A stretch of DNA of 62,088 nt, counting the filler, from Pelomyxa schiedti (taxonomy: Eukaryota > Protista > Evosea): NCBI GenBank assembly GCA_020536535.1. It is 9 parts of 9 records of this genome, joined end to end, with 100 filler letters (N's around TTAATTAATTAA, not from the genome) between each part and the next. Parts side by side here need not be neighbours in the genome. Positions count along the whole stretch, not along the records: positions 5,196 to 30,237 come from JAHLWZ010000343.1; 8 more parts are not named here. The stretch is one strand, 5' to 3'. Positions 5,196 to 28,440 of the stretch are shown here, one piece after another (positions within the stretch are counted from its first letter, which is position 1; the number at the start of each line of letters is the position of its first letter). The notes below the pieces were generated by a model. That model worked only from the letters and a program-made list of their open reading frames with translations. It did not search any database and was not told the origin of the DNA. A program made the translations under genes and the position numbers.

Positions 5196-5928
5196 TCCCC
5201 CCCCCCCCCCCCCAAATAAGTTCAACTACATTGCATTGGAGTGATGTAAGACCTCTTTTGGCTTTCTAACTAATGTCTCAATTAGTTGGCTACCTTATTT
5301 GGCTACATAAACCCAACAAACAAAAACAGGATTTTTATTCAAATTGGTTTTTTGTCAGACACAGTACCCAGTAACGAACATCTACATCCCCATCTTCAGG
5401 CACGTCTGTGCGCTGGGCGGCATCTACCTCTGGAGACTGGTGACGCGACACTCGGATTCGATCGATCAAACATATTGGGGAAACAAAGCCCAGGTGCCAG
5501 GGAAAAGCACTCGTCACCTCCATTCCGCCAGAGCCCAATCCAGTGCATTGGGGAACCCGCCTCCCGTGAGGGTTCTGTAGCCACAACGGCCTTTTTGTAT
5601 GGTGCTTCCTTGGAGTTTATTGCTCGTTGATCATTCAGTGTAATCAAATTGAATTGTCCCTTGGCTATTGTTTCAAACCATAGATTCTTTGTTTCTGGTT
5701 GACCCTACGTTGCAGCCCCTCAGATTTCCTCTCGATGGTCCATGGCCAGCTTCTTGGCTCACACACGCTCTCCCAGAAACAAGAAGCACCTGTGATGTAC
5801 ACGTTATGTTCTTTCCGTTCCCACGTGTTCAACAACAATGGAGGAAGTGACAGGAAGTGAACAGCCAGACCACCACTTCGCTTCTGAGAAGGACAAAATC
5901 AAAAATCTGGAAATTTCCGTGGTTGCGA

Positions 5929-7949
5929 ATGGCATCGCAGGCCGGGCCTCAAGACGTGGCGGGTCTCAACGAAAAAGTAGGCGCCGCGATGTGCCAGTTC
6001 GCCACACATTACTTCCACGGCGACTCAGTCGACCGCGACGTCGACAAGGCCGTGTCGCTCTGGGAGGGCGCAGCACGCCTGCGCCACCCGCAGGCCCTGG
6101 CCCAGCTCGCCTGGTGCCACCACCACGGCGTCGGCGTCGACCGCGACCTGCCGAGGGCCGTGTCACTCTACGAGGACGCCATCAGCCTCGACAAGACCGC
6201 GTCGTGGCGGCTTGGTGTGTGCTACTTGCACGGCCACGGTGTGGATAGGGACTGGGCCAGGGCCGCGGATCTGATGCAGCAATCCGGAAATGATCCAGAT
6301 GCGGTTGCATACCTTGGGTGGTGCTATTTGTGGGGATGTGGTGTGGAGAGGGACGAGGCGAGGGCCGTGGAACTGTTAAGTAGCGGTGCTAGTTCTGGCT
6401 GCGCGAGGGCGGCTGTGTTCCTTGGGTATTGCCGGGAAAGGGGTATTGGTGTGGCCAGAGACGTGGCCCACGCCAATGCGTTGTATGCTGGGGGAAAGGA
6501 GGTGCCTGATGGTAGGGGGGCTCTTGGGGAACTTGGGGAGTTTTGCCAAAGGGGTGATTGCGGTGCTCCAGTGGACAAGAGGGCCGCTGTTGGGTATTTC
6601 AGGATGGGTGCTGAGGGTGGTGATCCTGTTTCAATGTTCCACCTTGGCGTGTGTCTCAGGGATGCTGTTGTTGGTGTTGACTGTGACAGGGAGCAGTCGC
6701 ACCATTGGCTGGAGAAGGCTGCTCAGTTTGGGCACAAAGTTTCCTTCCAGATTAAAACCCTGGTGTGTTATTGTTCAGCCACCTGCACAGAACTGAACCC
6801 TCCTTAGGGGTACGAAATGGCAAGAAATATGGAATCATCGTACCAACTCCAAAACTACACAAAGGAAGATCTCTCGACATCAAGTAGCATGGATTTCGGG
6901 GTTTGGAGGTTCCTTGGGTCAAATGGGTCAAATGGTGCTGTCTTCAAGGTGCAATACCACAGAGGGCAAACAGAATTGGCCTCAACACCCACATCGACGA
7001 GCGAAATTGCGCTCAAGGTGCTTTTCAACTGGGCTAACACACCACAGCAGATGATGCTGAGGCATAAATACAATGCCGAGTTTGTGGTACTCTCGCTTCT
7101 TCCAAATCACCCAAACGTGATCCACCCTCTTGGTGCCTTGGTCCTCCCTTGGTGTGTGCACATTTTGTGATAATTATTAACTCACTCATTAATGCTCACC
7201 CACTCAACTCCAAAGCTTGCCAAGTGAGGACTATTTCAGCCAACCGGCCAACGAACTATTGGACACCCTCACACTCCATTGTTGGATCTCACTGGCATCA
7301 TTCCTCTCTCTCTCTTTGAAAGAATCTTTCTCTTTAGGAGTCACACAGGATCTGTTTGTTCAAGCACATTGAGTCACAATCCATTGTTCACAGGTTCGCG
7401 TGTGTCAGGTTCCCTTAGGGATAGCTCAACCACCACAGGAACATCAAGGAAGACAACATCATGGTGGACCCAGAGAGTGGCAAGCTGACACTGATTGACT
7501 TTGGCGAAGCTCAACACTGCCAAAACATGGATGTGGTACTGTCACCTGGAGCGGCAGTATGGGGAAACACAGGCACGATGCCACCAGAGCTGAGCTTGTT
7601 CCTCAAGAGTATCACGAGGGGAACCAGTGGTGTGTTCTCATACTCAAAGTGTGACTCTTTTGCACTCGCCCTCACATTCTGGGATGCACTCTTGCCACCC
7701 TCCCACAAGTTCATTGGGAGCACACTGAACCATGACATGAGTGCATTCAGCACCCAGTCGCTCGTCGACTTGTTCCCAGTCCCCTTGTTTTCATTGACAC
7801 CTCCCCAACCACAAGCGGTGATCACAGCAGCACAGGATGATGTCTCCCACACTGCCAACATTTTGCAGTCGGTGATGATTGGAATGATGAACCCTGACAA
7901 AACACTCAGGCTCTCTGCCACTGACGCGATCTCAGCACTAAGACACTAA
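5929..7949 (+). pseudogene. Sel1-repeat protein kinase paralogue 1 (frameshifted; catalytic HRD changed to HRN)
   Basis: Sel1 repeats (GVGVDRDLPRAVSLY, GCGVERDEARAV) splice to a kinase (FLGSNGSNGAVFKV, IALKVLF, DFGEAQ, WGNTGTMPPE). Relative to paralogue 2 a 17-nt deletion at about 7364 gives TGA at 7370-7372. The catalytic loop reads HR/NIKEDN. Confidence 0.8.
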
Positions 7950-8038
7950 AAAATTCGCAATTTCGTTGGTGTTGATAAATAACAACCCTTCGACCTTGTC
8001 TTAGTGTCACAGCTTTACAACACCGCCCATAATCGCGA

Positions 8039-11000
8039 ATGGCATCATGGTTCGGCGCGCTTTGGTCGGCCGCGACCACTACGACTGCTCCGCCTCCCTC
8101 GTCGTCGTATCCCCCGGCGTACACATCCCCAACCCCGCCGCCGGGCGTACCTCCCATAACCGCACTTAGCCAGCCACTGCCCCCTCCATTAGTCGCCGCC
8201 CCCACCAATAACAACCTGTTGAATACGTCGCTGTTGCCTCCGCTATTCTCGTTGACGCCCCCGCCGTCTCACACCCCAGTCGTTTCCGCGCCCCCCACAA
8301 CCAGTCCCATTATTGCCCCCGCGGCCCTTCCCAATGCAACGGCAATTAGTCCCGTCCCCGCCGTCAGTGTTGGCGTTGGCGTCGGCAGCATTAATAGCCC
8401 GGTAGTGGCCACTTCAGTAATTGGGGCGTCCCATAATTCTAAACCGTCACCGCCACAACAACCCACCACTACCATCGCCAGCACAACAGGGGGTACACTC
8501 ATCAGGGATTCTACTATTAATTCTGCTGCTCAAATCAACCCACCACAACCTAAAATTGTACAGCAGCAGGCAAAGTGCTCGTCTATTCTGGCTGAAATAT
8601 TCAACGATTGTATGTCGTTCCTCTCCTAGGTTTTTATTTTTTGTTTGACCCTATTTTCCTTCGCAAGCATTTAATGTTTAATGTGACTAATTACTTATTG
8701 CTTTTCTCTTGGGGTAGCTCTACCATCTGATAAGTTGGATGAAGCACTCTCGGAGTTAAGTGATATGACTGTGGCTCACCATCACTTGTGTTCTGTATGT
8801 ATAGAACTATTTGCAATTGCTTGTTTTAACTGACGTCATATTTTTTTCATGAGCAGCTTATTGGGAACAGCATTCCTGATCTCATCAAGATACTGAAAGA
8901 GGGCAACCGCTACACTCCTGGCCATGCGCAGCTTGTCCTGCAAATACTCTGTGAAATCTGTACTCCTCAGCCAGCCACAAAGCAAGTGTCACATGCACCC
9001 GACTCCTCTAGTGTTGAGAAATCCAACGCCGAGTCTGTTATCAAGGTATACTAGAAAACCTATTTTTGCTGAGTATTACCTAATTTCTGTTAACAGCACA
9101 TCGGGATCATAATCAACCTCATTGAATTGCGCGCTCAACACTATTACATCCGTTATTACACTGCCCATCTCTTGCGCACTCTGTTGGGAGTAATCAGACC
9201 ACAACTGCAATCAGCACTTATGGATACACCCCTGGCCATTGGGAGGGTTGTGGATTTATTGGCTGATGAGCGTGAAGCTGTGCGAAATGGTGTGATTGAC
9301 CTTCACTCCCTGTCTCGTGTGTGTAACTTCCCACAGAAGGGTTACTGCTTTTGCAGCAGCTGTGCAATGACCACCAGGAAATCCAGAAAGTGGGTATTAT
9401 TGTCTCCCTTATGCTTGTTTGGTCACCATTTCCTCAGTTGGCCGCCTTCGAGGGTTGCTTTGAAAAGATTCTCCACATCATTACCCAAGAGGGGGGAAGT
9501 GAGGGGGGCATTGTCGTTGGAGACTGTCTTGCTCTCATCATCACATTACTCACAGGAAATGTCTCAAATAAGGTAATTCTCACCTTTCTACTTTGAAGTG
9601 CCAACTGGTGAAACCAAAAAAGAACAATTTTCGTGAAAGTGGGTGCATCCGAGGAATTGTCGACTTGCTTGATCTTCTTCCAAGTGACATGTGGCTGCTT
9701 ACAGACAACAAACTCAGAGCTATTTTGTTGACACTTGATATAATAAGGCTGCTGCTGTCCAAGAATAACACAAGTGATTTGCCTCGAAATCAGGCAAGAT
9801 ACTTCCTTTTTTTTCCTTCACTTTGACATTCCCACACAGGCTGCTTGCATCAAGGCTGGAATTCTCAACCATGTCATCAGCATCGCACTTGGGCAGGTCA
9901 ACTCGCTGCTACTGCGAGTCAGGGCCTTGTATGCCCTTGGGGATTTACTTCACAGCAATCCCGAATCTCGCTCACTTTTCACTCAGGCATGCGTCTTGGT
10001 GTCTGACAAGCCAATTTCCGCTGTCCTCAGGCAAGAAAAGATGTTAGAAAAACAATCAAATACTCACACTTGCCAACAGGCTTACAACAGTCGCATTGAA
10101 TACAAACGAGATGAAAGAAAGAGCAGCTACCCTGTTCGCCTTTCAAGTACTCTTCTTCCCACTACTCAGAGTATATTTCTCACGCTCCCCCAGAACTACT
10201 TGTGCCAAAATGAGGAGGGTCAAGTCGGCATTACATCCATGTTAACTCCCTCTCCAACCGCAGGTTAATTATCAACCTCTTCTCAATTTCAAAATATTTT
10301 ATCCACTTGTTTTTGATATTGAATAACAGTGGTAGAGCAGGAGACAGAAACACCTCATTTGCAGCTTTGCTGCTCCCTAAATTATACGGATGGGATACAC
10401 CAACCACAAATCAGCAGCCACCAATGATACGTGTTGAGAGAGTGGATAGCATTGGAGGGTGGTGTGCAGCCATGGTTTTGCTTCAGTTACTCCAAGGGTG
10501 CAATGCCAGCAAAGAGTTGTTGTTGAAGATACCTCTGACAATTCCATCTGATGGTACTTCACTCATCAAAAGCAATCAATACTCACCATCTCTGCAGGTA
10601 AAACCATCTTGATTCGAGTCTTTGAGGCACTGAAACACAGCACCTCTGTCACATGGAATTCACCTTGCTGGATATGTGTGGGATTGCTGCGAGTTCTACT
10701 CGAGTGGTTGAACAAGTCCCGCCCCGCTTGCGAAATTCTTTTTCCGGCTTCACTTGCTCAGCCCAACTTCATATATGTGCGCATTGGGTCAAGGCATTCC
10801 TTTCTGGATACTGACTCATCTACTAGTTTCTGGAGCTGAGTAATGACTCACAGGCAAGCATTCATATACAGGGTCTGGCAGTACTCATTCTTGCCATTGC
10901 TTTGGAAAACTTGAATGATGAGTTGAGGTAAAAACAAATATAAATGCAAAAATTTTCCTTAAAACATGCACAGAAATTCGTTTTATACCATTGCGCAACA

Positions 11001-13418
11001 AAAAGGCAGTGTTGACCAACTTATGAACAAACTTGATCAACTCAGAAAAAGTTCTGAATTCGTTGTGGCTGAGAAGCATGTGGTTTGTGCCTACAATAAA
11101 ATATGCACTTAACAATATCGTTGGGAAAGGTGGAGGAGCCACCTGCTGAAGAAACAAGTCTCCATATTTATGACCATTCTTTCACCTTATTTTTCAAAGA
11201 CTCCTATGGTGTGGACATTTAGTTTTTACTTACGTAAACTCACGTTGTTCAATGCAGACCGAGTCACAAATTCTTTTAAGAATTCTCCCAATTCAAACCC
11301 TACAACTCCTTGCAGCACACAACCCACGCAACTCATTTCCCCGTCCCAGCCAATTCCTACTCCAACACCAATTGTAAAACCTTCCACATCTCCCTCCCTC
11401 TCATCTTCACCACTACCCCCCACACCAGCACCATTGGTACCAACACCCACAGTAACTCCCGTTGCATCATTGACTGCTTTTCCTCAAAGTCCCCCAATGA
11501 AAGCAAGCGATCTCCCATTTTCTCTGTTTCCTTCCCCTCCTTCAGCTGATGTTGTGCAGTCCTACAAGGTGAGGGGAAACTCGTCTTTCCATCAAACTCA
11601 CACACAACCAAGAATGTCATTGCCCATCAAGAGAGAGAGCTTGAGACTCTCAAAAAGCACTCTAAGGATCTTGAAACCAAATTGAAGCAAACTGCCCAAC
11701 AGCTTTCTGGGGCTCAGGTTTGGGCACTCCTTTGAAATCCAAAATTTCACCCGTTTCTCAAAGAAAAACTCTGAAGCCCACGAATCCCAGGAACTGATGT
11801 CCAAAAGAGTCACAGAACTGGAAAAATCTCTGTTGGAATTAAATCAGACCAGCCGTGCAACTGAACACAGTTTAAAAACTCAAAATGCGGCCCTTTCGAG
11901 CCAAGTGTCCACTCTTTCAAAATCACTTGCAGATTTTGCCAATGTACGGCCTGCATTCATTTTTCAGTAGAAATATTTTCAGTTTCACGTTTGTATCCAG
12001 GTTCGGCAAGAGTCTGAAGAGTTACGAAATCAAAACTCATCCCTCCAGAAGAAACTCACTGAAGTTGAAACAAATCTTTCCAACTTCAAGATTGTATTTC
12101 TCCACCCCCCACATACCCTTATTGTCTAATTGGACTCTGCAATAAGATAAGACAACAAGAGCTTGATGCCTTGAATCAGAAAATCAACATGGACGCGTCC
12201 AAGTACGAGGCTGTCATTCAATCTCTCAACCAAGTAAGTTTTTCAAAACACCCTGTTCCTAAAATTCCTCACGGTTGATGCAGCAACTGGAAACAGCACG
12301 GTGCTCCCTTCTGAGGCAACCAGAAAACCAAACGTGGCAAGAAGAAAAACAGAGAGTGGGTGTCACTCCTCTCACTGTAAATCAAAATTCCACTGACTGT
12401 GAAAATGGAACAACAGATGGAAGAGTTTGCTGCAGTGCAGAACTCGAAAATCTCAGAATTGGGCTCGTCTCTGGTTGATCATTTTCAAAGTGCTTGCATT
12501 CTATTCCCTGACCAAGAAATTGCAGGTATCCAAAGAGGAAGAGTTGACTCTGGCCACAATGAGATGCAAACAATTTGAAAACCTTGCCCAAGATGCACAG
12601 ACAAAACTGGTTCAATTCACGCATTCCATCAATTCTTCTCACCACACAAAGAACGAAACTATTGCAAGAGCAGAAACGGCAGAAGGAAATTTTGCCGAAA
12701 TCAGAGATCTTGTGGGTGCCAAATTTCAACTTTTTTTCTTTTTAACAAACAAACAGATGAACATGGTTGAAGAAGAGAAAAAGGAAGTTGAAGAGGAAAG
12801 GAACCAGCTGCTCGAACGAACCCAAGAACTGGAGGCGGCAAAAGCTCAAATGACCGCGGAACTTCACAGCCTGAGCTACAAACTCCTGGTGCTCTCACAT
12901 ACCGATATTCTCAATTCCCATTTCTTTCTCCCCGCTCACATCATTTACAGCAAGCCGGCGGCTTCAACTCCCTGCCGATGAGCTCTGCACCAACAACACC
13001 AACACCCGCACACCTTCCGCAATCAACAACCGTGTTTCCGGGAGCGATGCCCCTCACCATCTCCCAGCCCCCACCAACAAATAGAACATTCACCAGCAAC
13101 AACATTGCACACAACAACAACACCACACCGGCAGCAACCACACCGAAACCCACCCTGAATCTCCACCCGCAGTTCACCACACCACCACAACAACACCCGG
13201 ACATCCAAAGGCAGCACCCTCCACCACCGTCACCAACACCATCATCGGCAAATGTTCCCCGCACCCAGCAACGTGATTATCCAGTACTCAAAGCCACACT
13301 ACCACAACAAAAACCAGCCGCCACCACTATTTCCACCACAGCTGAACCACTGCCGCCGCCTTCCAACGACGCTGACGACGATGGTTCTGCTGCTCTCGCC
13401 GAGTTCCTGTCATCCTAA
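8039..13418 (+). CDS. USO1: General vesicular transport factor p115/Uso1 (multi-exon)
   Basis: Head-domain motifs YIRYYTAHLLRTLL..PLAIGRVVDLLADEREAVRN, EIQK/LAAFEGCFEKILHIITQEGGSEGGIVVGDCL and NNFRESGCI. Coiled-coil exons follow, then an acidic tail NDADDDGSAALAEFLSS*. Confidence 0.9.
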
Positions 13419-13639
13419 TGGAATACAACAATCAAACATCATAACACCCACCCACATCACCATACAGAGAAAAAAAAATGGCAATTCTTTGAAGCTAAGC
13501 ACAAGGGCGTCATCGACAACAACAACAACAACCGATTCCCCCTCAGGCGACCACGATCAGGTTTGCCGGCAGCAGTAATCCCAGGCAAAAGAAGGCTTTT
13601 GTTTTTAAAAGACGTTCAACACATTCAACGCTTTTCTTA

Positions 13640-15073
13640 TCATCGTTGAAGCCATGAGGCCCAACCATGGAAGTTAACAATGGGTTTTAACAGCTGGAAT
13701 GTGATGACATGGGCACCAGAGGACTCCTCAGTGACGAGTATCTCGTGCCCGGATTCGCCTACTTGGAACAGAAGGCCACCTTCAACAAAAGGTTGCCGGA
13801 ATCCCCTGTTGAGTTTCTGTGACCTCACTGGCTTGCTTGTGTCATTCACATCCCACACTGTGTAGGTGTCTGCTTCATAGCAAAAAACACAGAACTGAGA
13901 CTCGTTCAGCTGTGAGACCCACCAATTTTCATTCTTGGAAGTCTCTTGGACTTGTTGTAGTCTGCCAGTTCGTTCCTCAATCATGGTGACCTGACGAATA
14001 GCAGAGGATTGCTGTGTTACAAGGGCACGACAACCACTTGATTTTGTCAGCACAAGATAATTGCAGCAGTTCCTGAAAGTTGCGTTTACAGAGAGGTTCA
14101 AGTCAGCCAACCTTGGAATTGTTGAGCTCAACACCACCAGAGTCTTGGATGACGAAGTTTCCCTGAGGTCCACAACTGCAATCTCAAAAAAGCTCTCGTT
14201 ATCCATGAAAAGAAGAAGGGCGTGGTCTTCATTGGTCAGTTTACAGCTTGGTTGGCAATTCCACCTTATTCTTCCCTTGCATGCAACATCAAGTGGAACA
14301 ACAACGACAGATGGATTCTTGCTCAATGCTGCAGCAGCACTTTTCTTTGGAATCTCAACAACAACCATCGTCCTCTTGTCACAGTCACACATCACCAGCC
14401 ATTTTGAATTGTAACCGCGGCGGATGTTGTACTTCCACTGTGGGGTGTAATCAAGCAGTGTCACCCTCTGGCCAGTCACCCTGTCCTGAAGGACGAACAC
14501 ATAGCCTCTCCGCAGCACCAAGTAATCCCGAGTTGCAAACAAAAGTTTCACATAACTCCTCTGGACCCACCACCTCATTTCGTGAGTGAGCGTCAGCAGC
14601 ACCAGTGACACCCCGAACGTGATCATCACAGTTTGCCCTTCGAAATTCATTTGTCCTCCGTCATTTTCCCACCACACGGTGTAGAACCTCGAGTTTTCCA
14701 TCAGCCACTCCCACACCAGCCTCACAACCAGCGTCCCGTCCCCGTCCCCGTGACCGTGACCACCACCACCACTCCCATAATTCGTCGCCAGCAGCCGCAG
14801 CAGCGGGCACCCGGCGCCGCCGCACCGCGGGTGCGTCCCGGCGGCCATCGCGCCGACTTGGTCCCTCGCCGTCTCCTTCATCGCCTCCACCCTCGTCGTC
14901 GTTGTCGCGGTAACCATACCGGTAGTTGCGCTTGTTGACACCCGTCTGGAGATCTCCGTCGACGCCGGCACTACGGTGACCACGCGGCCCCCCTGTTGGT
15001 GGTGTCGGGTCGTAGTGGCGACGGCGGGAGCGCATGGAGGAGGAGGAGGTGATTGGGGCACAAAGGGGTGCAT
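13640..15073 (-). CDS. Intronless lineage-specific hypothetical protein with an N-terminal HPRCG motif (copy A)
   Basis: Long open frame. The ATG at 15073 (MHPF) is conserved in copy B, whereas the upstream ATG is not. Confidence 0.8.
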   Translation of the reverse strand: MHPFVPQSPPPPPCAPAVATTTRHHQQGGRVVTVVPASTEISRRVSTSATTGMVTATTTTRVEAMKETARDQVGAMAAGTHPRCGGAGCPLLRLLATNYGSGGGGHGHGDGDGTLVVRLVWEWLMENSRFYTVWWENDGGQMNFEGQTVMITFGVSLVLLTLTHEMRWWVQRSYVKLLFATRDYLVLRRGYVFVLQDRVTGQRVTLLDYTPQWKYNIRRGYNSKWLVMCDCDKRTMVVVEIPKKSAAAALSKNPSVVVVPLDVACKGRIRWNCQPSCKLTNEDHALLLFMDNESFFEIAVVDLRETSSSKTLVVLSSTIPRLADLNLSVNATFRNCCNYLVLTKSSGCRALVTQQSSAIRQVTMIEERTGRLQQVQETSKNENWWVSQLNESQFCVFCYEADTYTVWDVNDTSKPVRSQKLNRGFRQPFVEGGLLFQVGESGHEILVTEESSGAHVITFQLLKPIVNFHGWASWLQR

Positions 15074-15258
15074 TGATCTGGTTGTTTGGTTTGATTGATG
15101 ATTTTCACAGAAAAGTGTGTTGTTCATTGTGGCCTGCCTTGCTTCAATCAGAAATGGTGGTGAGATTATTCGCGAGACGTTCTTCCAATGTTGGATTCTG
15201 GGTGGTGTTTTTCATTCCTTCCAACTTACCGATCAAAAAACAGAGTTGGTTGTTGGGA

Positions 15259-18156
15259 ATGTCAGACCGTACCACGACCAGCAGCAACGATGGCGATTCG
15301 GGGTTGAACGATCAGATCGATGCCGGGATGTATCGCCTCGCTCGGTGCTACCTGTACGGGGAGCACGGCGTGCCCCGTGACGAAGCAAAGGGCGTGGCAC
15401 TGCTGCAACGTGCTGCCCACGGCGGCGACGTGAGTGCCATGTTGAGGCTTGCGCGGTGCCACTGGCACGGTTGGCATGGCTTGCCAACGGACAGGGAAAA
15501 GGCAATTCGATTGTTTGAGGCTGTGCCTGGTGGAGGGGGCATGTGGGGCTTGGGGTGGAACCACTATAATGAACGCAGGGGAGCAACCTACAACGTGGAT
15601 AAGGCTGTGTCAGCGTGGAAAAAGGGTGCGGAGCTGGGTGAACCACTTGCGCAGGTGGAACTTGGGTGGTGTTACCAAAACGGTGTGGGTGTGGAGTGTG
15701 ATCCACAAAATGCTTTGTCACTGTTCAAAACAGCGTGCATCAAATTGCAGAGCCATTGGCGTATGGCTCAATGCTATTTGTGTGGTGAGGGTGTGGAGAG
15801 AGACTGGGAACAGGCTGTGGAGCTCCTCAAACAATGCCCCAAGATTGAGGGGAATGCACAGGCATACCTCGGGTGGTGCTACTTGTGGGGTTGTGGTGTG
15901 GAAAGGGACATGTCCAAGGCTGTTGAGCTGCTCAATAGTGCTCTTCTCAACAAATGGCACAGGGCTGGGGTATTCCTTGGGTGTTGTTACGAGAGGGGTT
16001 TGGGTGTGCGACAGGATATCAACAGGGCCAAGGAGTTGTACAACAATGCAAAGAAGTCCTCTCTTGAAGGTACACCGGCATTGACAGAACTGGGAGTGTA
16101 TTTTCTCAGGGGTGATTGTGGAGCTCCAACTGACAAGAGGGCAGCTGTTGGATATTTCAGGATTGGCGCCGGGGGTGGCGATCCCGTTTCAATGTTCCAC
16201 CTTGGTGTATGTCTAAGGGATGGTGATGGCGTTGGTTGTGACCTTGAGGAGTCACGCCTCTGGCTTGAGAAGGCTGCCAGGTTGGAACACAGAGGTGCAC
16301 AGAAGATCCTTCTTCAACAACGCAAACCAACCACCATCTCCACTACTGATGGATCAACTGTGTGTTCCAACCTGGCACCTCACACAGCAACCACAACAAC
16401 TTTCCACAACAATGGAGGTTTGGAAGAGCACCGCAATGGTGAGGCAGAAGAGAGTTTGAAACAACAATGTGAATCTCTGAAAAGACGAATCATAGAGTTG
16501 GAAAAACAGAATGAGAAGGTACCTCCCCACGCCATTCACCTGATTCAATTTTCCTTTTCCTGCAGTTGCAACAAGAAAGCAAAACACTTGAGAGGCGTGT
16601 CTCAGACACAGAAGAAGCTCTGTCTCAACAACGAAAGACCGTTGAAGACTTGAGGAAAGACCTCATGGAAGAAGTGGAAATGTGCAAAAGATACAAGGTA
16701 GTGAATGGTGTTTCTGAAATCTCATTCTTTTGAAACAGAACACTGTGGACACAATGACGTCTCTGATTTCAGCGACAGCCGCTGATTTCAGGGTTGAGAA
16801 ACTGCTTGGAACCGGCTCAAATGCAGCTGCATTCAAGGTGCAATACATCACAGGCAAAGGCACACCACCATCAGTTTCATCACTCAACAACAGAGGAGCA
16901 GGAGGGGAAGAATCAACACTTTCTTCAGCAAACAGCACCACAGACAGCACCAGCAGGAGGGAGATGGTGATGAAAGTGCTTTTCAACTGGGAGAACACAC
17001 CACAGCAGACGATGCTGAGGCAGAAATACATGGCTGAGTGTGTGATCCTCTCATTGCTTCCAAATCACTCAAATGTGATCCACCCCCTTGGTGCCTTGGT
17101 CCTCCCTTGGTGTGTGTGCACATTTTGTGATAATTATTAACTCACTCATTAATGCTCACCCACTCAACTCCTGATCCAGCCTCCCATCTGAATTTGTGGA
17201 GAAAATACCAAGTGAGAAAAAGTATTTCAGGGAAGAACTGTGCAACAACAAATCGTTGGCCATCCTCATGCCCCACTGTGGCATCACCTTGTCTGCGTTC
17301 CTCTCTTCTTCCTTCAGCATCCAGAAGAAAACAGTTGAATTGGCACACGATCTCCTTCTTCAAGGGCTCAAGGCTATCCACCACATCGAGTCACATTCCA
17401 TTGTTCACAGGTGCTAAGCTTTCTGTTCATGTTTGTTGTCATTAACAATCAGCACAACTCACACACAGGGACATCAAGGAAGACAACATTCTTGTTGATC
17501 CAGAGAGTGTCAAGCTGACACTGATCGACTTTGGCGAAGCGCAGCACTGCCTGAACACCAACCTTGAGTTGGCGGTTTCAACCACAACGACATCATGGGG
17601 AAACACAGGCACGATGCCACCAGAGCTGAGTGTATTCCTCAAGAGTATCACGAGGGGAACCAGTGGTGTGTTCTCGTACTCAAAGTGTGACTCTTTTGCA
17701 CTCGCCCTCACATTCTGGGATGCACTCTTACCAACACCCCACAAGTTCATTGGGAGCACATTGAACCGTGACATGAGTGTCTTCAACACCCATTCACTCC
17801 TCAGTCAATTCCCTGTGCCTTCATTTTCCTCAGGTTCAGCATCAACACCAAGCACTTCAGGCTCACCAGCAAGACAAGAAGCCGAGCCACAGCCCAAGTC
17901 ATTCCTTTCACGTGTTCTGCCTTTCACACTGTTTTCGTCATCAACGACTACAGCACCAACCCCCCAAGTTCAATCATTGCCCACATCAACGACAACAACA
18001 TCCAATGTGAGTGCTGCAGAAAATACACCTGACAGCAACAACAGGAGTGCCATCATGGTGGCGGTACAGTCAACACTGATTGGGCTGATGAACCCCGACA
18101 AGGCTGCCAGGCTCTCCACCACTGATGCAATCCCTCGTGTCACCATCAAGGACTGA
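15259..18156 (+). CDS. Sel1-repeat / coiled-coil / Ser-Thr protein kinase, paralogue 2 (apparently intact)
   Basis: Exon 1 has Sel1 repeats and a coiled coil. One phase-0 coiled-coil exon follows (LQQESKTLERRVSDTEEAL..YK). Kinase motifs are LLGTGSNAAAFKV, MVMKVLF, HR/DIKEDN, DFGEAQ and WGNTGTMPPE. All hand-spliced junctions stay in frame. Confidence 0.9.
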
Positions 18157-18355
18157 ACAGTACTTGGTTACGGGGGACAACCATAACAATAAACAACACT
18201 AACCAACGACACCCGCCCCCGCCATTAACCGTCGTCGAACCACCCACACCCGCACTCCAAGGCTGAGCAAAAACCTGATCGCGATCGTGTCTCGCAAGGG
18301 GACTTGGGGTCAAATCATTTGCACAAAAAGGTGTGAAAAACCAAAATCACCGCCG

Positions 18356-20611
18356 ATGTACCACACCACAACTGTCGACGACCCACATTGCCAAGAAACC
18401 AGCACAACAACAACATCGGCCGATGCGAGGGCGACGGCGCTGTCACGCGCCGTGTGGGTGTCGCGCATCGTGTGGGACTGGGTGGTGCCGTGGCTGGTGC
18501 CCCCCAGCCGCGGGCCGCACGGCGAAAAAGGAGCCGCGCCGGCGATGACCCGGGAGCAGGCGGCGGCGCTGTGCGGGGTGGCCGAGGCGATGTTCCCGCT
18601 GCGCAGGTTGGCACGCAGGGCCCTGGTGGCGCGCTGCACCAAGTGGCACGTCGCGCTGAGGGCAGCAGCCGAGGCCGGTAGCACATCGTGCGTGGACTGG
18701 CTGCTCACCACAAGGAGGAGGACAGCGGATGAGGAGGAGGCGGCGAGAGATGGAGAGGGAGAGGGGGAAGCCGTTGTTCAACTAGTGTCACAACAGGAGA
18801 AGAGGGTGAGGAGGAGGAGGAGGAACAACAAGGAGTTCATGTGTGTGCTTGGGGGTTTGTGTGAGGGTGGCCACTTGGCGATGGCCCAGAACCTCGTCGA
18901 TGGTGATTGGCCTGGACTCGCCTGGGTGGAGTATCCTCCTCTGCTTGGAGGAGCAGATCATGGTGAGGCTGCGGCGCGGAGCCACGGTAATATTGATTGC
19001 GGGAATCGGGAGCTTGGTGACTACGTGCGGGATTCCCAAATCCTGACTGGAGTGTGCCAGAGGGGATGGGGTGATGTGGCCAAGTGGATTGTCCAGAGGT
19101 TTGAAATCAGGGAACTGTGGGAGTTCGTTAAGCCAATGGGTGCAGCACTGGAAGGGGGTCACCTGGAGTTGGCTCAGTGGATGGCGGGCACATTCAACTT
19201 GTTGGAGAGGTTCAGAGAATATTCCATGATGAAATTCCACACCCAGGCATGCAAGAGCGAGAACCTGGAGGTTGTCAAGTGGTACTTCGAAAGGAGTCCA
19301 CCATTGGAAGATTCTGGTGCCATCCTCGCCACCTTCTGTGCTTGCCTTGAGGGGAAAAAAAGCAACAGTTGCGTGGAGATATGCAAGTACGCGAGGGAGT
19401 ACCTTGGGTTGCCTTGTGATCCTGATTCTGATTGGTTCAATGAGCTTTCCAGAATCAGGAGAGTTGACGTGTTGCAGTGGGTGGTATCTGAATTCAATGT
19501 TGCTCCCTCAATTGATGATGCTGGGATGTACTGCCAAAGGAGAAATGCACTCGAGTTTCTCAAGTTCCTGCTTGTGGACGGTTTGGATGGGCAGCCTATT
19601 CTGACAGCAACACCAGCGCTATTTATCTCAGCCTGCAAGGGCATAAAGGGAAGCAATAGCATGCAGGTCGTGAAGTGGTTGTCAACGAGGGTGAATACAC
19701 CGCTTTCCGCAGAGGAGATTGACCTCTCGTTCATCACAGCGTTGGCCAACAACGAAACCTCGATTGCGAGGTGGCTGGAAGATTCCCACCACATCTTGGC
19801 GCAGAATGCAGGAGGCCCAAAGGCAGTGCGTCTCATTTTCAGGGTGTGCAGAGCAATGCCTAGGTTCGGCAGAGAATCAGCAGGGATTGAGTGGCTCCTT
19901 GATCACTTGGATCTCCACTCAGCCACTCCACAACAGATAACGCGGCTCGTTCTGGACAGCGTGGAAGACAACGTGACAGATCACAAGTCGCTGCAAGCTG
20001 TAATCCTCCTTCTTGAGAAGTTCCAGTCGGTAATCCCCGAAGAAAACAAGTTGGACCTCATCTCCTCTGTCCTGCAGCACAGCATTAATGATGAACCCGA
20101 ACAAGTCCAAAGGATCACCACATTGATGGGTGGAATCATCAGGAGCAACAAGCCAGCAATCTCCAGGTGCCTTGCTGAGTGCTGTTACTTTGGCTCCACC
20201 AAGGCAGTCAAGTGGCTGATCACACAGTTCCATCTCGAGCGTGGGCACATAACAGCTTACAACAACACAATCCTCATTAAAGTGGTGTCAATGGGACAAG
20301 AGTGCTGCGCAGAGTGGCTCATCAATCAGTTCGGCATCACATTTGATGAGATACAGCCTGTGAGTCACGTCTTTCTGGATGGATTCCCCACAATGAAGAT
20401 GCTAGTGGAGGTTTTCCCAGGGATCACAGGCACCAACATCAAGGAGAAGCTCCTTCCACTTGTGTGCCAATCACCAATCATTGCGCAGTTCACATTGAGG
20501 CACTTCCCTGAAGTGACAAGGGAGGACATTGCTGGACCCTGTTCCACCTCGTATGGTAGTACTTCAGACACACATTGCTGGCTCATTGACACACCACAAG
20601 AACAACACTGA
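18356..20611 (+). CDS. Intronless degenerate ankyrin-repeat-like protein (about 750 aa)
   Basis: Long ORF with repeated ankyrin-like units: LCEGGHLAMAQNL, VCQRGWGDVAKWIV, ALEGGHLELAQWM, ACKSENLEVVKWY. Confidence 0.8.
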   Translation: MYHTTTVDDPHCQETSTTTTSADARATALSRAVWVSRIVWDWVVPWLVPPSRGPHGEKGAAPAMTREQAAALCGVAEAMFPLRRLARRALVARCTKWHVALRAAAEAGSTSCVDWLLTTRRRTADEEEAARDGEGEGEAVVQLVSQQEKRVRRRRRNNKEFMCVLGGLCEGGHLAMAQNLVDGDWPGLAWVEYPPLLGGADHGEAAARSHGNIDCGNRELGDYVRDSQILTGVCQRGWGDVAKWIVQRFEIRELWEFVKPMGAALEGGHLELAQWMAGTFNLLERFREYSMMKFHTQACKSENLEVVKWYFERSPPLEDSGAILATFCACLEGKKSNSCVEICKYAREYLGLPCDPDSDWFNELSRIRRVDVLQWVVSEFNVAPSIDDAGMYCQRRNALEFLKFLLVDGLDGQPILTATPALFISACKGIKGSNSMQVVKWLSTRVNTPLSAEEIDLSFITALANNETSIARWLEDSHHILAQNAGGPKAVRLIFRVCRAMPRFGRESAGIEWLLDHLDLHSATPQQITRLVLDSVEDNVTDHKSLQAVILLLEKFQSVIPEENKLDLISSVLQHSINDEPEQVQRITTLMGGIIRSNKPAISRCLAECCYFGSTKAVKWLITQFHLERGHITAYNNTILIKVVSMGQECCAEWLINQFGITFDEIQPVSHVFLDGFPTMKMLVEVFPGITGTNIKEKLLPLVCQSPIIAQFTLRHFPEVTREDIAGPCSTSYGSTSDTHCWLIDTPQEQH

Positions 20612-21029
20612 ATCTTAAGAAATTTCTTTTGATTTTTTTTAGAAATGGGGACATGACATCAGAAGCAACCAAACCATCAGTGTAGGGCTGCAATAACCCT
20701 CTGCGAGTCAGTTCAGTGAGTTTGGAGGGCCAGTGTGGCCGAGGTAGTACAGCAAAAGCGTTTCTTGACTCAACATAATTGGCAAGGTTGAACTCCTCGT
20801 AGGGAGAACTCACCCATTGAAGAAGAAAACAAAACCTGAAAATATCGTGGGAGAATTGTGAAGAAGTTTCATCCAGGAGACCATTTGGGTGTCGGGGAAT
20901 AGTTGTAGTGCAAAGGAAGAGGGCAACTGCAACTGGAAGCTTTAAGTCCTTCGAGAAAAGCTTGCACAAGTGGCATGGAATGCAGCATTCTGAGTTTACT
21001 CGTTAGTTTACCATCAGTATTGTGAAAGG

Positions 21030-22004
21030 GAACAGAGGGAGACACACCATCACCTTCTTCCTGTAGTCGCATCCAGTGAGGACTGCCAAGTCAACAATCC
21101 AGGAAGGTTTGAAGGGTGTGTGCACACAGTGACAGAATCTCAGAGTTTGAGCTCCCAAGGGCTCGAACAACTCTGATTGGTTGTCCTTTGGAAGAGAGCT
21201 TTGTTGTGTGCTCCAGCAGTATTTCCCTTTTTGCCAAATATCAGATTTTTTCTTTTTGTGAGGGCATGCATACTATGACAGTTGTAACTATGGCGAACTT
21301 GTGCTTTTCAATTGTATATTTCTTTCCAAGTGTGTGGTGGAACAAATCAAGATTCCCACATTTCATGAACTCTTTGATATCCATAATCCTTCGGTTCTGT
21401 TTCTCAGTCACTTTCGGAATGGAAATTGCCGGAGTGAATCCATTTAAGACCTACAACAAACATAAAAACATATAGATATTGAATTAGGCGGTCACAAACA
21501 GTCAAAGAGTTATGTGTTGATGGAAGAAAAAGACACACCACTAAAAGCTTAACTTGATGCTCCACAACCACCTGCGGAACCAATAGCCCACTGCTCGTGA
21601 AAATTCGGGACAACTTCCACCCATTACACAAAACTCTGCCTTCTGGGTAATGCTATCGTCAACGTCAGAGCCCCAGCAAAGCCTGCGTTGTTGTTAGGTT
21701 TGCTTGACGGAAACAAACAAACAAACAAACAAACAAACAAACAAACAAACAAACAAACAAACAAACAAACAAACAAACAAACAAACAAACAAACAAACAA
21801 ACAAACAAACAAACAAACAAACAAACAAACAAACCTTGTTAAGAGCCTGTTAATCAGAGCACGTGCGTCCACCACCAAGGTCTTAGTTTGATTTTTTTGT
21901 GTGAAAGCGAAAAATGACAGGAACAGTACCTTTCCAGCTACACAGCACTGCGTCCCCCAATTGGGCAGCTCACTCAGTGTTCCCTGCAACTTGTCGACAC
22001 CCAT
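21030..22004 (-). pseudogene. XPG/FEN1-superfamily (Asteroid-like) PIN-domain gene, degenerate; 3' end unresolved
   Basis: Splicing (exons 22004-21930, 21881-21835, from 21682) gives MGVDKLQGTLSE..GK/TLVVDARALINRLLT/R..MGGSCPEFSRAV. Downstream segments read VKLLV/VLNG, IRVVRALGSSNSEILSL and an H2TH-like DLAVLTGCDY (21063-21092). At least one frame change is required. Confidence 0.55.
21711..21834. repeat. (AAAC)n microsatellite, about 31 units, inside intron 2 of the XPG-like gene
   Basis: Direct reading. On the minus strand the array begins exactly at the GTTTGT donor. Confidence 0.95.
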
Positions 22005-22208
22005 CCCCTATTTTATCGTGTCACAACTTTTGGACTTCCCTCGGTTTTTGATTGAGTTGAAACAAGTGTACAGGTGGTCACGTGGCAGCGCACATTCCAC
22101 TACACTTCACTGCTTCGGGGTTCCCTTTGGGGTCCGGTGAGTCAGGCTGTCCCGCGCCTGAGTTTTTCACAGAACTCCACCTTTTTGATCAAGGGAGCGG
22201 TGTTGGTG

Positions 22209-25200
22209 ATGTCAAACAGTACTATCACCACGAGTACCAATGACAATTCTGAGTACGTCAGGAGGTTGACTGATATGGTCGCTGCTGGGGACACCTACGC
22301 TATGGAGAGTCTCGCCGAGTGTTACCTGTGCGGGGAGCATGGCGTGCCCCATGACGCCGCAAAGGGCCTGGCGCTGCTGCAACGTGCCTCCAGCGGGGGC
22401 AACGCGTGTGCCATGTTGATGCTCGCTTGGTACCACTGGGAGGGTTCCCACGGCTTGCCAAGGGACATGGGCAAGGCACACCAATTGTACGAGGCTGTGC
22501 CCCGTGGAATGGGATTGTGGAGCTTGGGCAATAACTACTACTACGGATACAGAGTAGATCGCGACGTACACAAGGCTGTGTCACTGTGGAAAAAGGGTGC
22601 CGAATTGGGCGATCATCAGTCAATGGTGGAGCTTGGGTGGTGTTACAAGAATGGCGTGGGGGTGGAGTGCCATCCACAAAATGCTTTTTCATTATTCAAA
22701 ACAGCATGCAGCAAAGATCACCGGTGCCAATGGTGTCTGGCTCAATGTTATTTGTGTGGTGAGGGTGTGGAGAGAAGAGACTTGGCACAGGCTGTGGAGC
22801 TCCTCAAGGTGTGCACACCAAATGAGGATGATGGGAATGCGCAAGCCTACCTCGGGTGGTGCTACTTGTGGGGTTGTGGAGTGGAAAGGGATGTTTCAAA
22901 GGCTATCGAGCTGTTCAACAGTACTCTTCCAAACCAAAGGGCTGAGGTATTCCTTGGGTGTTGTCATGAAAGGGGTTTGGGTGTGAGACAGGACATCAAC
23001 AGGGCCAAGGAGTTGTACAACAATGCGAAATTGTGCCATATTGATTGCTCAACACCTTTGACAGAACTGGGAGTGCATTTTCTCAGGGGTGATTGTGGAG
23101 CTCCAACAGACAAGAGAGCAGCTGTTGGATATTTCAGGATGGGTGCCGAGGTTGGTGATCCCGTTTCAATGTTCCACCTTGGTGTGTGCCTCAGGGATGG
23201 TGATGGTGTTGATTGTGACGTGAAGGAGTCACGCCTCTGGTTGGAGAAGGCTGCCAGGTTGGAACACAGAGGTGCACAGAAGATCATTGCTCCACAACAC
23301 AAATCCACCACTTCCGCTGATGATACAACTGTGGAACACAACACAACCGAGTCGTGTGCCCCAGCAACCACACCAACCTCCCACAAAAATGCAGTCTTGG
23401 AAGGGCACAACAACCTGACCCACTGTGACTGCGTCAGTCTGAGACAACAATGTGAATCGATGAAACAAATAATCACGGAACTGGAAGAACAGAAGGAAAA
23501 GGTACAAACATCCCTGCTCTAAGATCTACCCAGTAATTCCTTTTCCTTCCAGTTGTTGAAAGGGCTCGTACAAGCCAATGCAACTCTCAGTCAACACCAA
23601 ACTGCTGTTGACAATCTGCAAGGTAAAGTGAAGGAAGAAGTGGAAAAGGGTACAAGATACAAGGTGTTTCTCGTGCTTCCACATTTTCCCATTCACCCTC
23701 AAACAGAAACTCTGGGCGGACTCAACAAAGAAGAATGAAGAGGTATTTGGTGCTGAAAAAAAAGGAACCATTTTTCTTCTTTTTGGTAACAGTGCTTCCT
23801 CTTTCACTCCTCAAAAAGCTCCAGAAAGAAAAGGAACAACTTGAGAGGCGTGTCTCAGACACAGAAGTAGCTCTCTTTCAACAACAAAATTCTGTGGAAA
23901 ATCTGAGGAGAGCTCTCACAGATGAAGTGGAAATGTGCAAGAGCTACAAGGTGTTCCTTTCTTCCGTCCAACCAATTCCATCAACTCACAAGCACAGAAC
24001 ACCGTGGAGACAATGACATCACTTATTTCAGCAACACCTGCTGATTTCAGGGTCCAGAAACTGCTTGGTACTGCTTCGAATGCTGCTGCCTTCCAGGTTC
24101 AATTTCATACAACAATCAATAGCCCCACGCAGGGCGGTACTACATCATCATCATCATTATCATCATTATCACCATCATCATCATCATCATCATCATCACC
24201 ACCACCATCATCATCACCTTCAAAATCAATGTGTCTTTATAGTTCAACAGCAATGGTGATGAAAGTCCTTCTCAACTGGGAGAACACACCCCAACAGATG
24301 AGGCTGAGGCAGAAATACATGGCTGAGTGTGTGATCCTCTCATTGCTTCCTATTCACCGAAATTTGATCCACCCTCTTGGTTCCTTGGCCCTCCCTTGGT
24401 GTGTGCTTTTTCACAAATCGTTTTTTATGTGTTTTAAAAACCCCAACATCACATTCAGCCTTCCAGCTGCATTTGTGGAGACGCTACCAAGGGAAAAAAA
24501 GAATTTTCTGGAAGAACTGTGCCACACCAAGTCGTTGGCCATCCTCATGCCCCATTGTGGCATCAGCCTGTCTTCATTCCTCTCTTCCTTCAGCACCCAG
24601 AGCAAGAAGATAGTTGAAGTGGCACATGATCTCCTTCTTCAAGGGCTTAAGGCGATCCATCACATCGAGTCACATTCAATTGTCCACAGGTATTTGTGTA
24701 TTTCTGTTTTTTGTTGTAATTAACAAAGAGCACACCACACAGGGACATCAAAGATGACAACATTCTTGTTGTCCAAGAGAGTGGAAAGCTGACGCTTATT
24801 GACTTTGGCGAGGCACAGAACTGCCCATATGCTGACCTCCAAGTGGATGTTTCCCCCACAACAACATCATGGGGAAACACCAGCACAATACCACCAGAGC
24901 TGAGCATGTTCCTCAAGAGGGAAACCAGTGGTGTGTTCTCATACTCAAAGTGTGACTCCTTTGCACTTGCACTCACATTCTGGGATGCACTTGCCAAAAT
25001 CCCACAAGTTTATTGGGAGCACACAGAACCGTGACATGAGTGCATTCAACACCCAGTCTCTACTAGCTGACTTCCCTCTCCAAGTATTTTCATCTGCACA
25101 GACAGGGTCAGGACCAGTGCTGATTGGGCTGATGAACCCCGATAAGAGTGCAAGGCTTGCTACCAGTAAAGCAATATCCATGCTTGAGGGTTCTGTCACA

Positions 25201-26383
25201 CCACAGGTCCCCCTGTCGACTGTTACCACTTTCCAGGTCGACACACTCATCGGGACTGGCTCAAGTTCGGCAGTTTTCAAGGTTCAAAACTGTACAATAA
25301 CAAGCTGCAGTTCATCGTCATCACCTTTGCCAGGATCAATAGTTGTGAACAGGGACATGGTGATGAAAGTTCTTTTCAACTGGGAAGACACATCAACTCC
25401 AAAATATCTGGCTGAGTGTGAGATTCTCTCATTGGTTCCAAAACACCCAAATGTCATCCACCCTCTTGGTGAGATGGTGGTACCTTGGTAGGAGTCGCCT
25501 GAAAAAAATAGATATAAATAATAATAAATACTTACTAACACTTGTGAAAAAGCCTGCCAACAGAGTTTGTGGAGAAAATTCCCCAAAAGATTTGTAGAGA
25601 ACTGTGCCAGAAAAACTCATTTGTTATGCTCATGCCCAATTGTGGAATAACTTTGCCCTTGTTTTTCTCTTCCCTTGTGGACCAAGGCATCAAGAAACAG
25701 AAGTTTGCTGATGTCACTGAAAGTCTGTTTGTTCAGGGACTCAAGGCCATACATCACATTGCTTCTCATTTTGTTGTTCACAGGTTTGTTCTCAACAGCG
25801 CAACCAAAACTAAAACCAAGTCAGAGATATCAAGGGGGCCAACATTCTTGTTGACCCAGAGAGTGGGAAGCTGACACTGATCGACTTTGGTGAGGCCCGA
25901 CACTGCCCAAAAATGATACTTGAGCTCAATTCCAGAACACAAGCATGGGGCAATCCAGGCATGATGCCACCAGAGTTGAGTGCGTTCCTCAAGAGAATTG
26001 CAGGTGGTGCAGGTGGTGTGTTCTCATACTCAAAGTGTGACTCTTTTTCACTTGCCCTCACATTCTGGGATTCCCTCCTGCCAGAATCCCACAAGTTCAT
26101 TGGGACCCCATTGAACCATGACATGAGTGCGTTCAACACTCAGTCACTCCTCACCCAGTTCCCTGTCCCCTTATTTTCATCCCCTCCACAACAACAAGAA
26201 CCAGCACAACAAAGGTCATGGTTTTCGTGGTGGTCACCAACACCAACAGCTGTAGCAGAGGATGATCTCACTCGTCATGTCAGAGTGTTGAAGGAAGTGA
26301 TGCTTGGCATGATGCACCCTGACAAGGATACCAGACTCTCTGCCTCTGATGCTATTCACTCAATTACTGCTGATCGAGTTTGA
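22209..26383 (+). CDS. Sel1-repeat / extended coiled-coil / tandem kinase-kinase, paralogue 3 (2-nt deletion in kinase A)
   Basis: Sel1 exon, three extra phase-0 exons, kinase A (HR/DIKDDN, DFGEAQ) and kinase B (LIGTGSSSAVFKV, HR/DIKGAN, DFGEAR, WGNPGMMPPE). GCACTTGCCA at about 24990 replaces GCACTCTTGCCA seen in paralogue 1 and gives a stop at 25032-25034. Confidence 0.8.
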
Positions 26384-28193: not shown

Positions 28194-28440
28194 TGGAATA
28201 CAACAATCAAACATCGTAACACCCACCCACATCACATACGGAGAAAAAGAAAAAATTCTTTGAAGCTAAGCACAAGGGCGGCATCGACAACAACAACAAC
28301 CGATTCCCCCCCTCAGGCGACCAGGACCACAAACTTCAGGTTTGCCGGCAGCAGTAATCCCAGGCACATTCAGCCCACTACCACAAAGTTAAAATTCTTT
28401 TGTTTTTGAAAGACGTTGTTCAACACATTCAACGCTTTTC

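Follow-up and report, generated by a model that had tools for sequence, protein, structure and literature searches.

The window analysed here is a stretch of 62,088 nucleotides from Pelomyxa schiedti (assembly GCA_020536535.1), in which nine parts of the genome are joined with filler between them, and one of these parts is the whole 25,042-bp record of scaffold JAHLWZ010000343.1 (window 5196-30237; all coordinates are those of the window unless another scaffold is named). P. schiedti is an anaerobic archamoeba with a genome of 52.4 Mb and 19,876 predicted proteins (PMC8887013). The scaffold carries three intron-bearing paralogous genes, here called A, B, and C, which are all located on the plus strand and before a 100-N gap. 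They encode Sel1 repeats followed by protein kinase domains, and they probably belong to a PINK1-related group of Ser/Thr kinases that has expanded to a very large size, serves modular signalling, and is found nearly only in P. schiedti. In the subfamily represented here, a constant C-terminal kinase is preceded by a Sel1 solenoid and a coiled coil. Gene models were built by stop-to-stop translation, by aligning the DNA of the copies to each other, and by inspecting the junction sequences. Each gene contains several short GT-AG introns at positions that are conserved across A, B, and C, with lengths of 41-155 nt in the spliced models of B and C. The start codons of the latter two are supported because the upstream sequence is not conserved between the copies.

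Gene B (15259-18156) is the intact copy, with five exons and an open frame of 2682 nt encoding 893 amino acids. The first exon (15259-16518) contains nine Sel1 repeats (PF08238, 169.7 bits, E 5.2e-51), a linker, and the start of the coiled coil, which continues through the second exon (16566-16697). The kinase N-lobe with a low-complexity insert is encoded by the third exon (16739-17109), the part from a segment resembling Insert 3 of PINK1 to alpha-E by the fourth (17180-17410), and HRD, DFG, the C-lobe, an S/T/P-rich insert, and the stop by the fifth (17469-18156). The four introns, of 47, 41, 70, and 58 nt, are all GT-AG. The coiled coil comprises the 70 residues 395-464 in a single heptad register without any Pro or Gly; 70% of the a/d positions are hydrophobic compared to 12% of the other positions, and 49% of the residues are charged. 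All catalytic motifs are present (GTGSNAAAF, VMK, AEC, HRDIKEDN, DFG), and the AlphaFold2 (AF2) model of the kinase has an ordinary active kinase fold (predicted local distance difference test, pLDDT, of 81.8) that matches active kinases at Z ~25. Judged from its sequence, gene B is a working copy. The corresponding NCBI model, P0001, carries the name '3-carboxymuconate cyclase' and a spurious intron that drops 17 residues of one Sel1 repeat.

Gene C (22209-26383) encodes a Sel1-coiled-coil-kinase-kinase protein in eight exons (22209-23501, 23553-23663, 23819-23950, 23998-24398, 24459-24689, 24743-25487, 25553-25783, and 25825-26383), of which exon 24743-25487 fuses the end of the first kinase in frame to the start of the second. 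Nine Sel1 repeats were counted by eye (PF08238, 159.9 bits, E 6.3e-48). The extra coiled-coil exon 23553-23663 is a diverged duplicate of the exon following it, and the coil reaches about 105 residues. Both kinase domains, C-K1 and C-K2, keep the beta-3 Lys, the alpha-C Glu, HRD, and DFG, and the Gly-rich loop of C-K1 reads GTASNA instead of GxGxxG. The C-lobe of the first kinase contains a frameshift (24990-24996, plus strand), at which two nucleotides are missing compared to gene B. The deletion is located after 24992, between the codons CTT (24990-24992) and CCA (24994-24996), and the original frame then runs into a stop at 25029-25031. Because the assembly was generated with SPAdes from Illumina contigs, this frameshift is probably real. 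Gene C thus appears to be a tandem-kinase variant that has been broken recently. In the NCBI annotation it is split into P0002 and the chimeric P0121, which bridges the frameshift by an invented intron and crosses the N gap into a Uso1 fragment.

Gene A (5929-7949; NCBI model P0019, 559 amino acids) combines Sel1 repeats with a decayed kinase. The Sel1 part (5929-6739, about seven repeats counted by eye; PF08238, 120.7 bits, E 1.6e-35) is followed by kinase exon 3 (6808-7151), a degenerate remnant of exon 4 (about 7210-7393), and exon 5 (7439-7949), in which HRN has taken the place of HRD. Exon 4 has lost its canonical acceptor and its first ~28 nt. In the remnant, neither the indels nor the net length difference from gene B are divisible by three, and a TGA stands in frame at 7370-7372. 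In P0019 the reading frame is preserved only because the model leaves out about 100 residues of the kinase core. Without the region from beta-4 to alpha-E, and with HRN, the product does not qualify as an active kinase, and these lesions characterise gene A as a putative decaying copy or a Sel1-only remnant. Its last exon shows a ratio of nonsynonymous to synonymous substitutions (dN/dS) of 0.26 at a dS of 0.77 when compared to gene B, and gene A has therefore been constrained for most of its history.

The Sel1 regions of all three genes score above the Pfam cut-off for PF08238 (30.7 bits), and GDCGAPxDKRAAVGYFRxGAxxGDPVSMFHLGVCLRD is found in all three copies. The exon-5 pieces of the kinases match Pfam Pkinase PF00069 with E-values of 1e-7 to 8e-9. 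DFGEA, WGN...PPELS, and YSKCDSF[AS]LALTFWD[AS]L are present in all four kinase domains, and KVLFNW is present in A, B, and C-K2 and changed to KVLLNW in C-K1. Neither a signal peptide nor a transmembrane (TM) segment was found in A, B, and C, the highest Kyte-Doolittle mean over 19 residues being 1.4-1.6 and located inside the kinase core, with polar N-termini. Pfam scans of the pieces of A, B, and C did not reveal any nucleoside triphosphatase (NTPase) domain. The original prediction, which had been made from this DNA alone, had listed Sel1 repeats with the long motif, a coiled coil where present (B and C encode one, A does not), the kinase signature, the lack of signal peptides and TM segments, and one intact copy (B), one disrupted pseudokinase (A, with HRN and a broken exon 4), and one tandem kinase (C). 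Pfam, translation, and hydropathy bear this out, with every listed element found at the coordinates given, and the proteins do look like cytosolic combinations of a repeat module, a coiled coil, and a kinase. The most informative point had been missed, which is that the kinase is PINK1-like.

In sequence searches of the PDB, PINK1 chains occupy the top eight places. With a single-sequence query PINK1 is found at E 2.5e-12 and the next family, Pim-1, at 1.5e-7. With a profile built from 12 family members PINK1 is found at 6e-14, and the alignment extends from before Insert 3 to past the activation segment; for other kinases in the PDB the alignment is confined to the surroundings of the catalytic loop. 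When 1.84 billion representative proteins were searched exhaustively with a profile, 51 clusters were obtained at E <= 1e-30, and every cluster that was looked up belongs to P. schiedti, to which the family is thus nearly restricted. The next matches are more distant P. schiedti kinases, the metagenome protein P0187, an ARM-kinase of Trimastix marina, and an SH3-kinase of Mastigamoeba, and these are followed by animal proteins named Pink1 (Hydractinia, Ornithodoros, Nematostella). In an ordering of the matches by their best-scoring single domain, the leading proteins from outside Pelomyxa are mostly either named Pink1 or 25-47% identical to it over 200-530 residues. According to the alignment, the family shares with PINK1 the motifs K-x-[LM]-F-N-[WY], PxLP...IP...N[KM][ST]L, GNxxxMxPE, and YSK[AC]D, as well as HRD[IL]KxDN and a RDPxxRLSA-like motif in alpha-I. 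The first of these follows the beta-3 lysine and is the KVLFNW motif mentioned above. In PINK1, Insert 3 is located between beta-4/5 and the hinge and is required for recognising the substrate. At this insert, HMMER aligns the family sequence LP.EF.EKIP...NKSLAILMP to human PINK1 VPLLPGALVDYPDVLPSRL...GRTLFLVM. This Insert-3-like segment is nearly invariant within the family, and the same columns are aligned in the alignment with the PINK1 sequences. The family has a variable low-complexity insert between beta-2 and beta-3 (pLDDT <55 at model residues 31-60). A Foldseek search with the kinase model of gene B returned PINK1 on ranks 1-8 by a small margin, and in VIA-align PINK1 gave the longest alignments and the highest identity. 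In the tree the family clade is separate from animal PINK1 (support 98), and the family kinases are PINK1-like but not PINK1 orthologues.

The family comprises about 90 members, this being the number of proteins that score more than 100 bits against the family profile among the proteins gathered, and makes up about 0.45% of all predicted proteins. The C-terminus is invariably occupied by the kinase, and the N-terminal part varies. Sel1 repeats are the commonest N-terminal module (about 20 members), followed by ankyrin repeats (about 12), and other members carry Ras/Roc GTPase, MORN, CNH/Vps39, or SH3/CS modules. P0137 contains a MoxR-type AAA+ domain, and P0157 (3021 amino acids) MORN repeats and a vWA domain. 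The latter two proteins thereby carry modules known from bacterial MoxR-vWA-beta-propeller systems, from which the name of Pfam PF20030 is derived. Tandem kinases have been found repeatedly (P0121, which is gene C, P0122, P0123, P0004, and P0139). Several paralogues are named 'calmodulin-dependent protein kinase' by NCBI. Sel1+kinase proteins of other organisms (P0040, P0075) were considered as relatives and rejected, as they have the reverse domain order and their kinases are not matched by the family profile at E 1e-10. No description of this kinase family was found in the literature searched, so that it has apparently not been described before.

A tree of 60 kinase domains was inferred by maximum likelihood. 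Its core Pelomyxa clade has strong support (99), and the module labels are interleaved. Given the well-supported branches, Sel1 must have changed at least five times and ankyrin at least three times. Two Ank-kinases, for instance, are placed among Sel1-kinases (99), and a GTPase-kinase has a Sel1-kinase as its sister (99). The B and C-K1 kinases are sisters (85), with A nearby together with P0004. C-K2 branches elsewhere in the same clade of 26 members that includes B and C-K1, and is therefore not a recent copy of C-K1. Adjacent family members are also present on other scaffolds. The family evolves by birth and death, as seen in the tandem clustering and the decay of some copies.

All domains are under purifying selection. 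B and C differ by a dS of 0.4-0.6, and their dN/dS amounts to 0.26 in the kinase core and 0.34 in the Sel1 core, with 0.40 in the N-terminal and 0.26 in the C-terminal half of the latter. The kinase of B compared to C-K2 has a dN/dS of 0.28. The values for all domains therefore range between 0.26 and 0.40, and there is no sign of positive selection in these domain averages. Pairwise comparison of 15 Sel1-kinases gave mean identities of 49% for the Sel1 region and 59% for the kinase. Within the Sel1 region, the first repeats have conservation values of 0.23-0.5, and the values rise towards the last two repeats (0.7-0.81), in which the long GDCGAP... motif is located. The Sel1 region is thus somewhat more variable than the kinase, mainly at its N-terminal end.

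Among the other genes of the scaffold, a Uso1/p115 vesicle-tethering gene (8039-13418, plus strand, 1348 amino acids, PF04869), an unrelated housekeeping gene, is located between A and B, and its 3' part recurs at 26767-28193. A gene of a previously uncharacterised beta-propeller family (13640-15127, minus strand) is oriented divergently from B and starts about 130 bp upstream of the B start codon, with a near copy at 28441-29910 (minus strand). It has no Pfam match. The AF2 model of its product (pLDDT 83) contains about 30 strands after an N-terminal helix and gave generic propeller matches in a structure search. At least 27 members of this family were identified, all of them only in Pelomyxa. 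A link of the propeller family to the kinases was considered given that P0006 combines an N-terminal propeller domain with Sel1 repeats, that a propeller gene adjoins the kinase genes on JAHLWZ010000343.1, and that it adjoins the Ank-kinase P0125 on scaffold JAHLWZ010001377.1 (L004). However, this link looks weak, as none of the 90 family kinases carries a propeller and four further propeller loci have no PINK1-like kinase as neighbour. On L004, C-lobe fragments of PINK1-like kinases at 1085-1669 (minus strand) and 6491-6768 (plus strand) are located in or beside models annotated as ankyrin protein and propeller protein, and represent additional decayed or mis-annotated family members. Another propeller-family gene adjoins a locus on JAHLWZ010000691.1 (L063, 3505-9304, minus strand), where a Roc-COR gene and a separate kinase model are probably one Roco kinase split by the annotation; this kinase does not belong to the PINK1-like family.

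Between B and C there is an intronless ankyrin-like gene (18356-20611, plus strand; NCBI model of 723 amino acids) with a G+C content of 0.61 in its first kilobase. Its product is 27% identical over 729 residues (E 3e-58) to the N-terminal 661 residues of P0137, a protein of 1519 amino acids that is composed of ankyrin-like, bpMoxR AAA+, and PINK1-like kinase parts. This homology suggests that modules might be shared between family members and neighbouring genes. The gap of 100 N's (26667-26766) is an RNA-based scaffold join, and the following sequence (26767-30237) is a separate contig whose placement behind gene C is uncertain. Immediately 3' of the join begins one copy of a 3.2-kb repeat (11987-15150 versus 26767-29950, 92-100% identity) that spans the 3' end of the Uso1/p115 gene and the propeller gene. 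A genuine segmental duplication could explain this repeat, as could an allelic or paralogous contig that was misplaced in joining. A fourth Sel1 gene starting at the contig end (29841-30237) was ruled out, as the similarity to the upstream region of B ends at about 15150. The first 20 positions of the scaffold (5196-5215) are a run of C (TCCCCCCCCCCCCCC...), which probably arose as an artefact at the end of a sequence assembled from amplified single-cell DNA.

Based on these data, the family most likely provides modular intracellular signalling by proteins that look soluble and cytosolic. Sel1 solenoids consist of tandem alpha/alpha repeats of 36-44 residues and are modules for protein binding, and here the solenoid would bind a protein partner or a substrate. 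Its variable N-terminal repeats might set the specificity, and the nearly invariant last two repeats could have a function that is common to all members. The coiled coil would hold two chains together, and the paired kinase domains could then activate each other by trans-autophosphorylation as in PINK1 dimers. The invariant Thr-Pro that directly follows K-V-L-F-N-W is a candidate for the phosphorylated site and corresponds in position to the activating Ser of PINK1; after phosphorylation the Insert-3-like segment might shape the substrate site. In PINK1, trans-autophosphorylation takes place in dimers, and the resulting phosphoserine (Ph Ser202, Hs Ser228) brings Insert 3 into an ordered state for binding the substrate (PMC7849173). 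A constitutively paired, trans-activating kinase would be the most economical mechanism because the coil precedes the kinase, Insert 3 is conserved, and a Thr-Pro is found at the position of the Ser.

Several observations weigh against assigning the family to the PINK1 group and against such a mechanism. In the alignment, the family has no counterpart of Insert 2, which follows alpha-C in PINK1. A mitochondrial targeting sequence (MTS) and TM segment of the PINK1 type were not found in the family proteins, which also end about 10 residues after alpha-I, while PINK1 continues for about 70 residues, and thus do not have the helical C-terminal extension. Because all these parts are missing, PINK1-like regulation may not carry over. 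The overall identity to PINK1 is 26-27%. The N-lobe of the kinase taken alone (P0001, residues 515-640) has no significant PINK1 match in the PDB, and therefore the sharing of K-x-[LM]-F-N-[WY] rests on the alignment with PINK1. PINK1, CDK2, and WEE1 tie at Z ~25 in VIA-align, so that structure alone does not discriminate between them. The affinity to PINK1 thus rests on sequence and not on the fold, because structure comparison does not single out PINK1. In addition, gene A does not have a coiled coil or a coiled-coil exon, and dimerisation by the coil as well as activation in trans are what we infer for B and C.

It could also be imagined, as the original prediction had done, that the proteins are cell-autonomous immune or symbiont sensors, in which the repeats would detect microbial molecules, the coil would oligomerise, and the kinase would be the effector. 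The family indeed offers much of what such a system would have: it is greatly expanded in one lineage, it forms tandem clusters and includes pseudogenised copies, tandem kinases occur repeatedly, different repeat modules are exchanged in front of a kinase that stays the same, and the N-terminal Sel1 repeats are its most variable part. One member carries bpMoxR AAA+, a family named after MoxR-vWA-beta-propeller ternary systems, and another a vWA domain. P. schiedti is described as living with obligate endosymbionts (PMC10579272). The predicted clustering is also seen on other scaffolds, where two family members lie side by side, the domain shuffling in the at least five Sel1 and three ankyrin switches on well-supported branches of the kinase tree, and the pseudogenisation in the decay of A and the frameshift in C. 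Nor is this a low-copy housekeeping family, given its roughly 90 members nearly all from P. schiedti; such a family had been named in advance as the outcome that would speak against immune function. The expected diversification of the Sel1 region holds only in part: the region is modestly more divergent than the kinase (49% versus 59% identity), but with dN/dS values of 0.34 versus 0.26-0.28 both are under purifying selection. The mean dN/dS of 0.26-0.40 does not show any domain-level excess in Sel1, whose conservation is only about 10 points lower than that of the kinase. The suggested likeness to NLRs is not seen, as A, B, and C do not have a STAND/NLR-type NTPase. The likeness to plant tandem kinases also fails, as the catalytic residues are retained in C-K1 as well as in C-K2 and the two domains look catalytically competent, unlike the usual pair of kinase and pseudokinase. 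Furthermore, ordinary lineage-specific kinase expansions of other protists look the same, and large repeat-bearing expansions without a known immune role exist in other protists, such as the Nek kinases of Giardia. An immune or symbiont-sensing function is therefore unlikely in our analysis.

Another reading, also unlikely, is that the family members are ubiquitin or ubiquitin-like protein kinases, in which Sel1, ankyrin, and GTPase modules replace the mitochondrial anchor and direct phospho-ubiquitin to organelles, vacuoles, or symbionts. PINK1, which phosphorylates Ser65 of ubiquitin and of the Parkin Ubl domain, is their nearest relative, and the Insert-3-like segment has been retained and is strongly conserved across the family, Insert 3 being the key element for ubiquitin recognition in PINK1 (PMC7849173). 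However, the low identity to PINK1 and the missing Insert 2 and C-terminal extension speak against it. At the activating Ser of PINK1 the family has the Pro of the Thr-Pro pair, the Thr being one position earlier, and substrate specificity is not readable from these data. P. schiedti is reportedly devoid of conventional mitochondria and packed with obligate bacterial and archaeal endosymbionts. Combining both ideas, the phospho-ubiquitin module of PINK1 might have been turned into a large modular surveillance system, in which swapped sensors mark symbionts, vacuoles, or organelles for autophagy or tolerance, and clusters of the A-B-C type evolve like immune loci. This combined reading is improbable.

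An artefact or foreign DNA (mis-assembly, contamination by bacteria or symbionts, or recent transfer from giant viruses or bacteria) is very improbable: Sel1, ankyrin, and MORN repeats are described as common in amoeba-associated bacteria and giant viruses (PMC5753266, PMC8831229), and the assembly was obtained from single-cell DNA amplified by multiple displacement amplification, assembled with SPAdes on Illumina contigs and then scaffolded with RNA-seq data (PMC8887013), with one scaffolding gap in this very scaffold, but A, B, and C all precede that gap, giant-virus contigs yield only generic kinases with 21-40% identity over short stretches, the Sel1+kinase proteins from outside Pelomyxa are reversed in order with kinases that the family profile misses at E 1e-10, and contamination and recent transfer are excluded because of the multiple short GT-AG spliceosomal introns at conserved positions and eukaryotic neighbours such as the adjoining Uso1/p115 gene.

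Thus, a PINK1-related expansion for modular signalling remains the probable explanation, and PINK1 is the first system to compare it with. PINK1 (PTEN-induced kinase 1), of the NKF2 family of eukaryotic protein kinases, is the nearest relative in sequence. It shares the beta-3 motif, Insert 3, and possibly the variable insert between beta-2 and beta-3, and it is activated in dimers. In contrast, the Pelomyxa proteins have Sel1 repeats and a coiled coil instead of MTS and TM, have neither Insert 2 nor the C-terminal extension, and exist in about 90 copies where PINK1 has one. PINK1 is known to sense mitochondrial damage and to occur as a single copy, and to our knowledge PINK1-like kinases have not been reported as an expanded family. 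Entamoeba histolytica, an anaerobe related to P. schiedti, is reported to have no PINK1 homologue (PMC9796589), and the same has been reported for Monocercomonoides (M. exilis), which is amitochondriate (PMC6759080). About 90 PINK1-like kinases in an archamoeba are unexpected because PINK1 is single-copy and reported absent from these two. The replacement of the mitochondrial anchor by varied targeting modules amounts to a natural experiment on the PINK1 core and Insert 3 away from mitochondria. Soluble, putatively coiled-coil-dimerised relatives of PINK1 may be easier to handle biochemically, and the family provides concrete genes for studying host-symbiont control in Pelomyxa. Users of the public annotation should not be misled by the names '3-carboxymuconate cyclase' and 'calmodulin-dependent protein kinase', and should note that gene C appears there as split and chimeric models.

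The eEF-2 kinase also joins a protein kinase to Sel1-like helical repeats, which serve protein binding in that enzyme. However, it has an N-terminal kinase of the alpha-kinase fold and C-terminal repeats, whereas here a classical eukaryotic protein kinase (PF00069) follows the repeats, and the eEF-2 kinase has no coiled coil and is not expanded to a family. The resemblance may be the source of the name 'calmodulin-dependent protein kinase' given to several paralogues. Plant tandem kinases (RPG1, WTK1/Yr15, Sr60/Sr62) have two kinases per polypeptide, as do C, P0122, P0123, P0004, and P0139, and also belong to clustered, duplicating families. However, they usually combine a kinase with a pseudokinase, have neither Sel1 repeats nor a coiled coil, and derive from unrelated kinase families, and of the tandem kinases compared an immune role has been shown only for those of plants. 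NLR and STAND proteins are built around a central NB-ARC or NACHT NTPase, which A, B, and C do not have, and only the distant member P0137 contains an AAA+ domain, which is of the MoxR type. The Nek kinases of Giardia, with ankyrin repeats and coiled coils, and the Roco kinases of Dictyostelium are lineage-amplified kinases with GTPase or repeat combinations and degenerate members. The Pelomyxa family differs from these expansions in that its kinase is PINK1-like and Sel1 repeats are its commonest partner.

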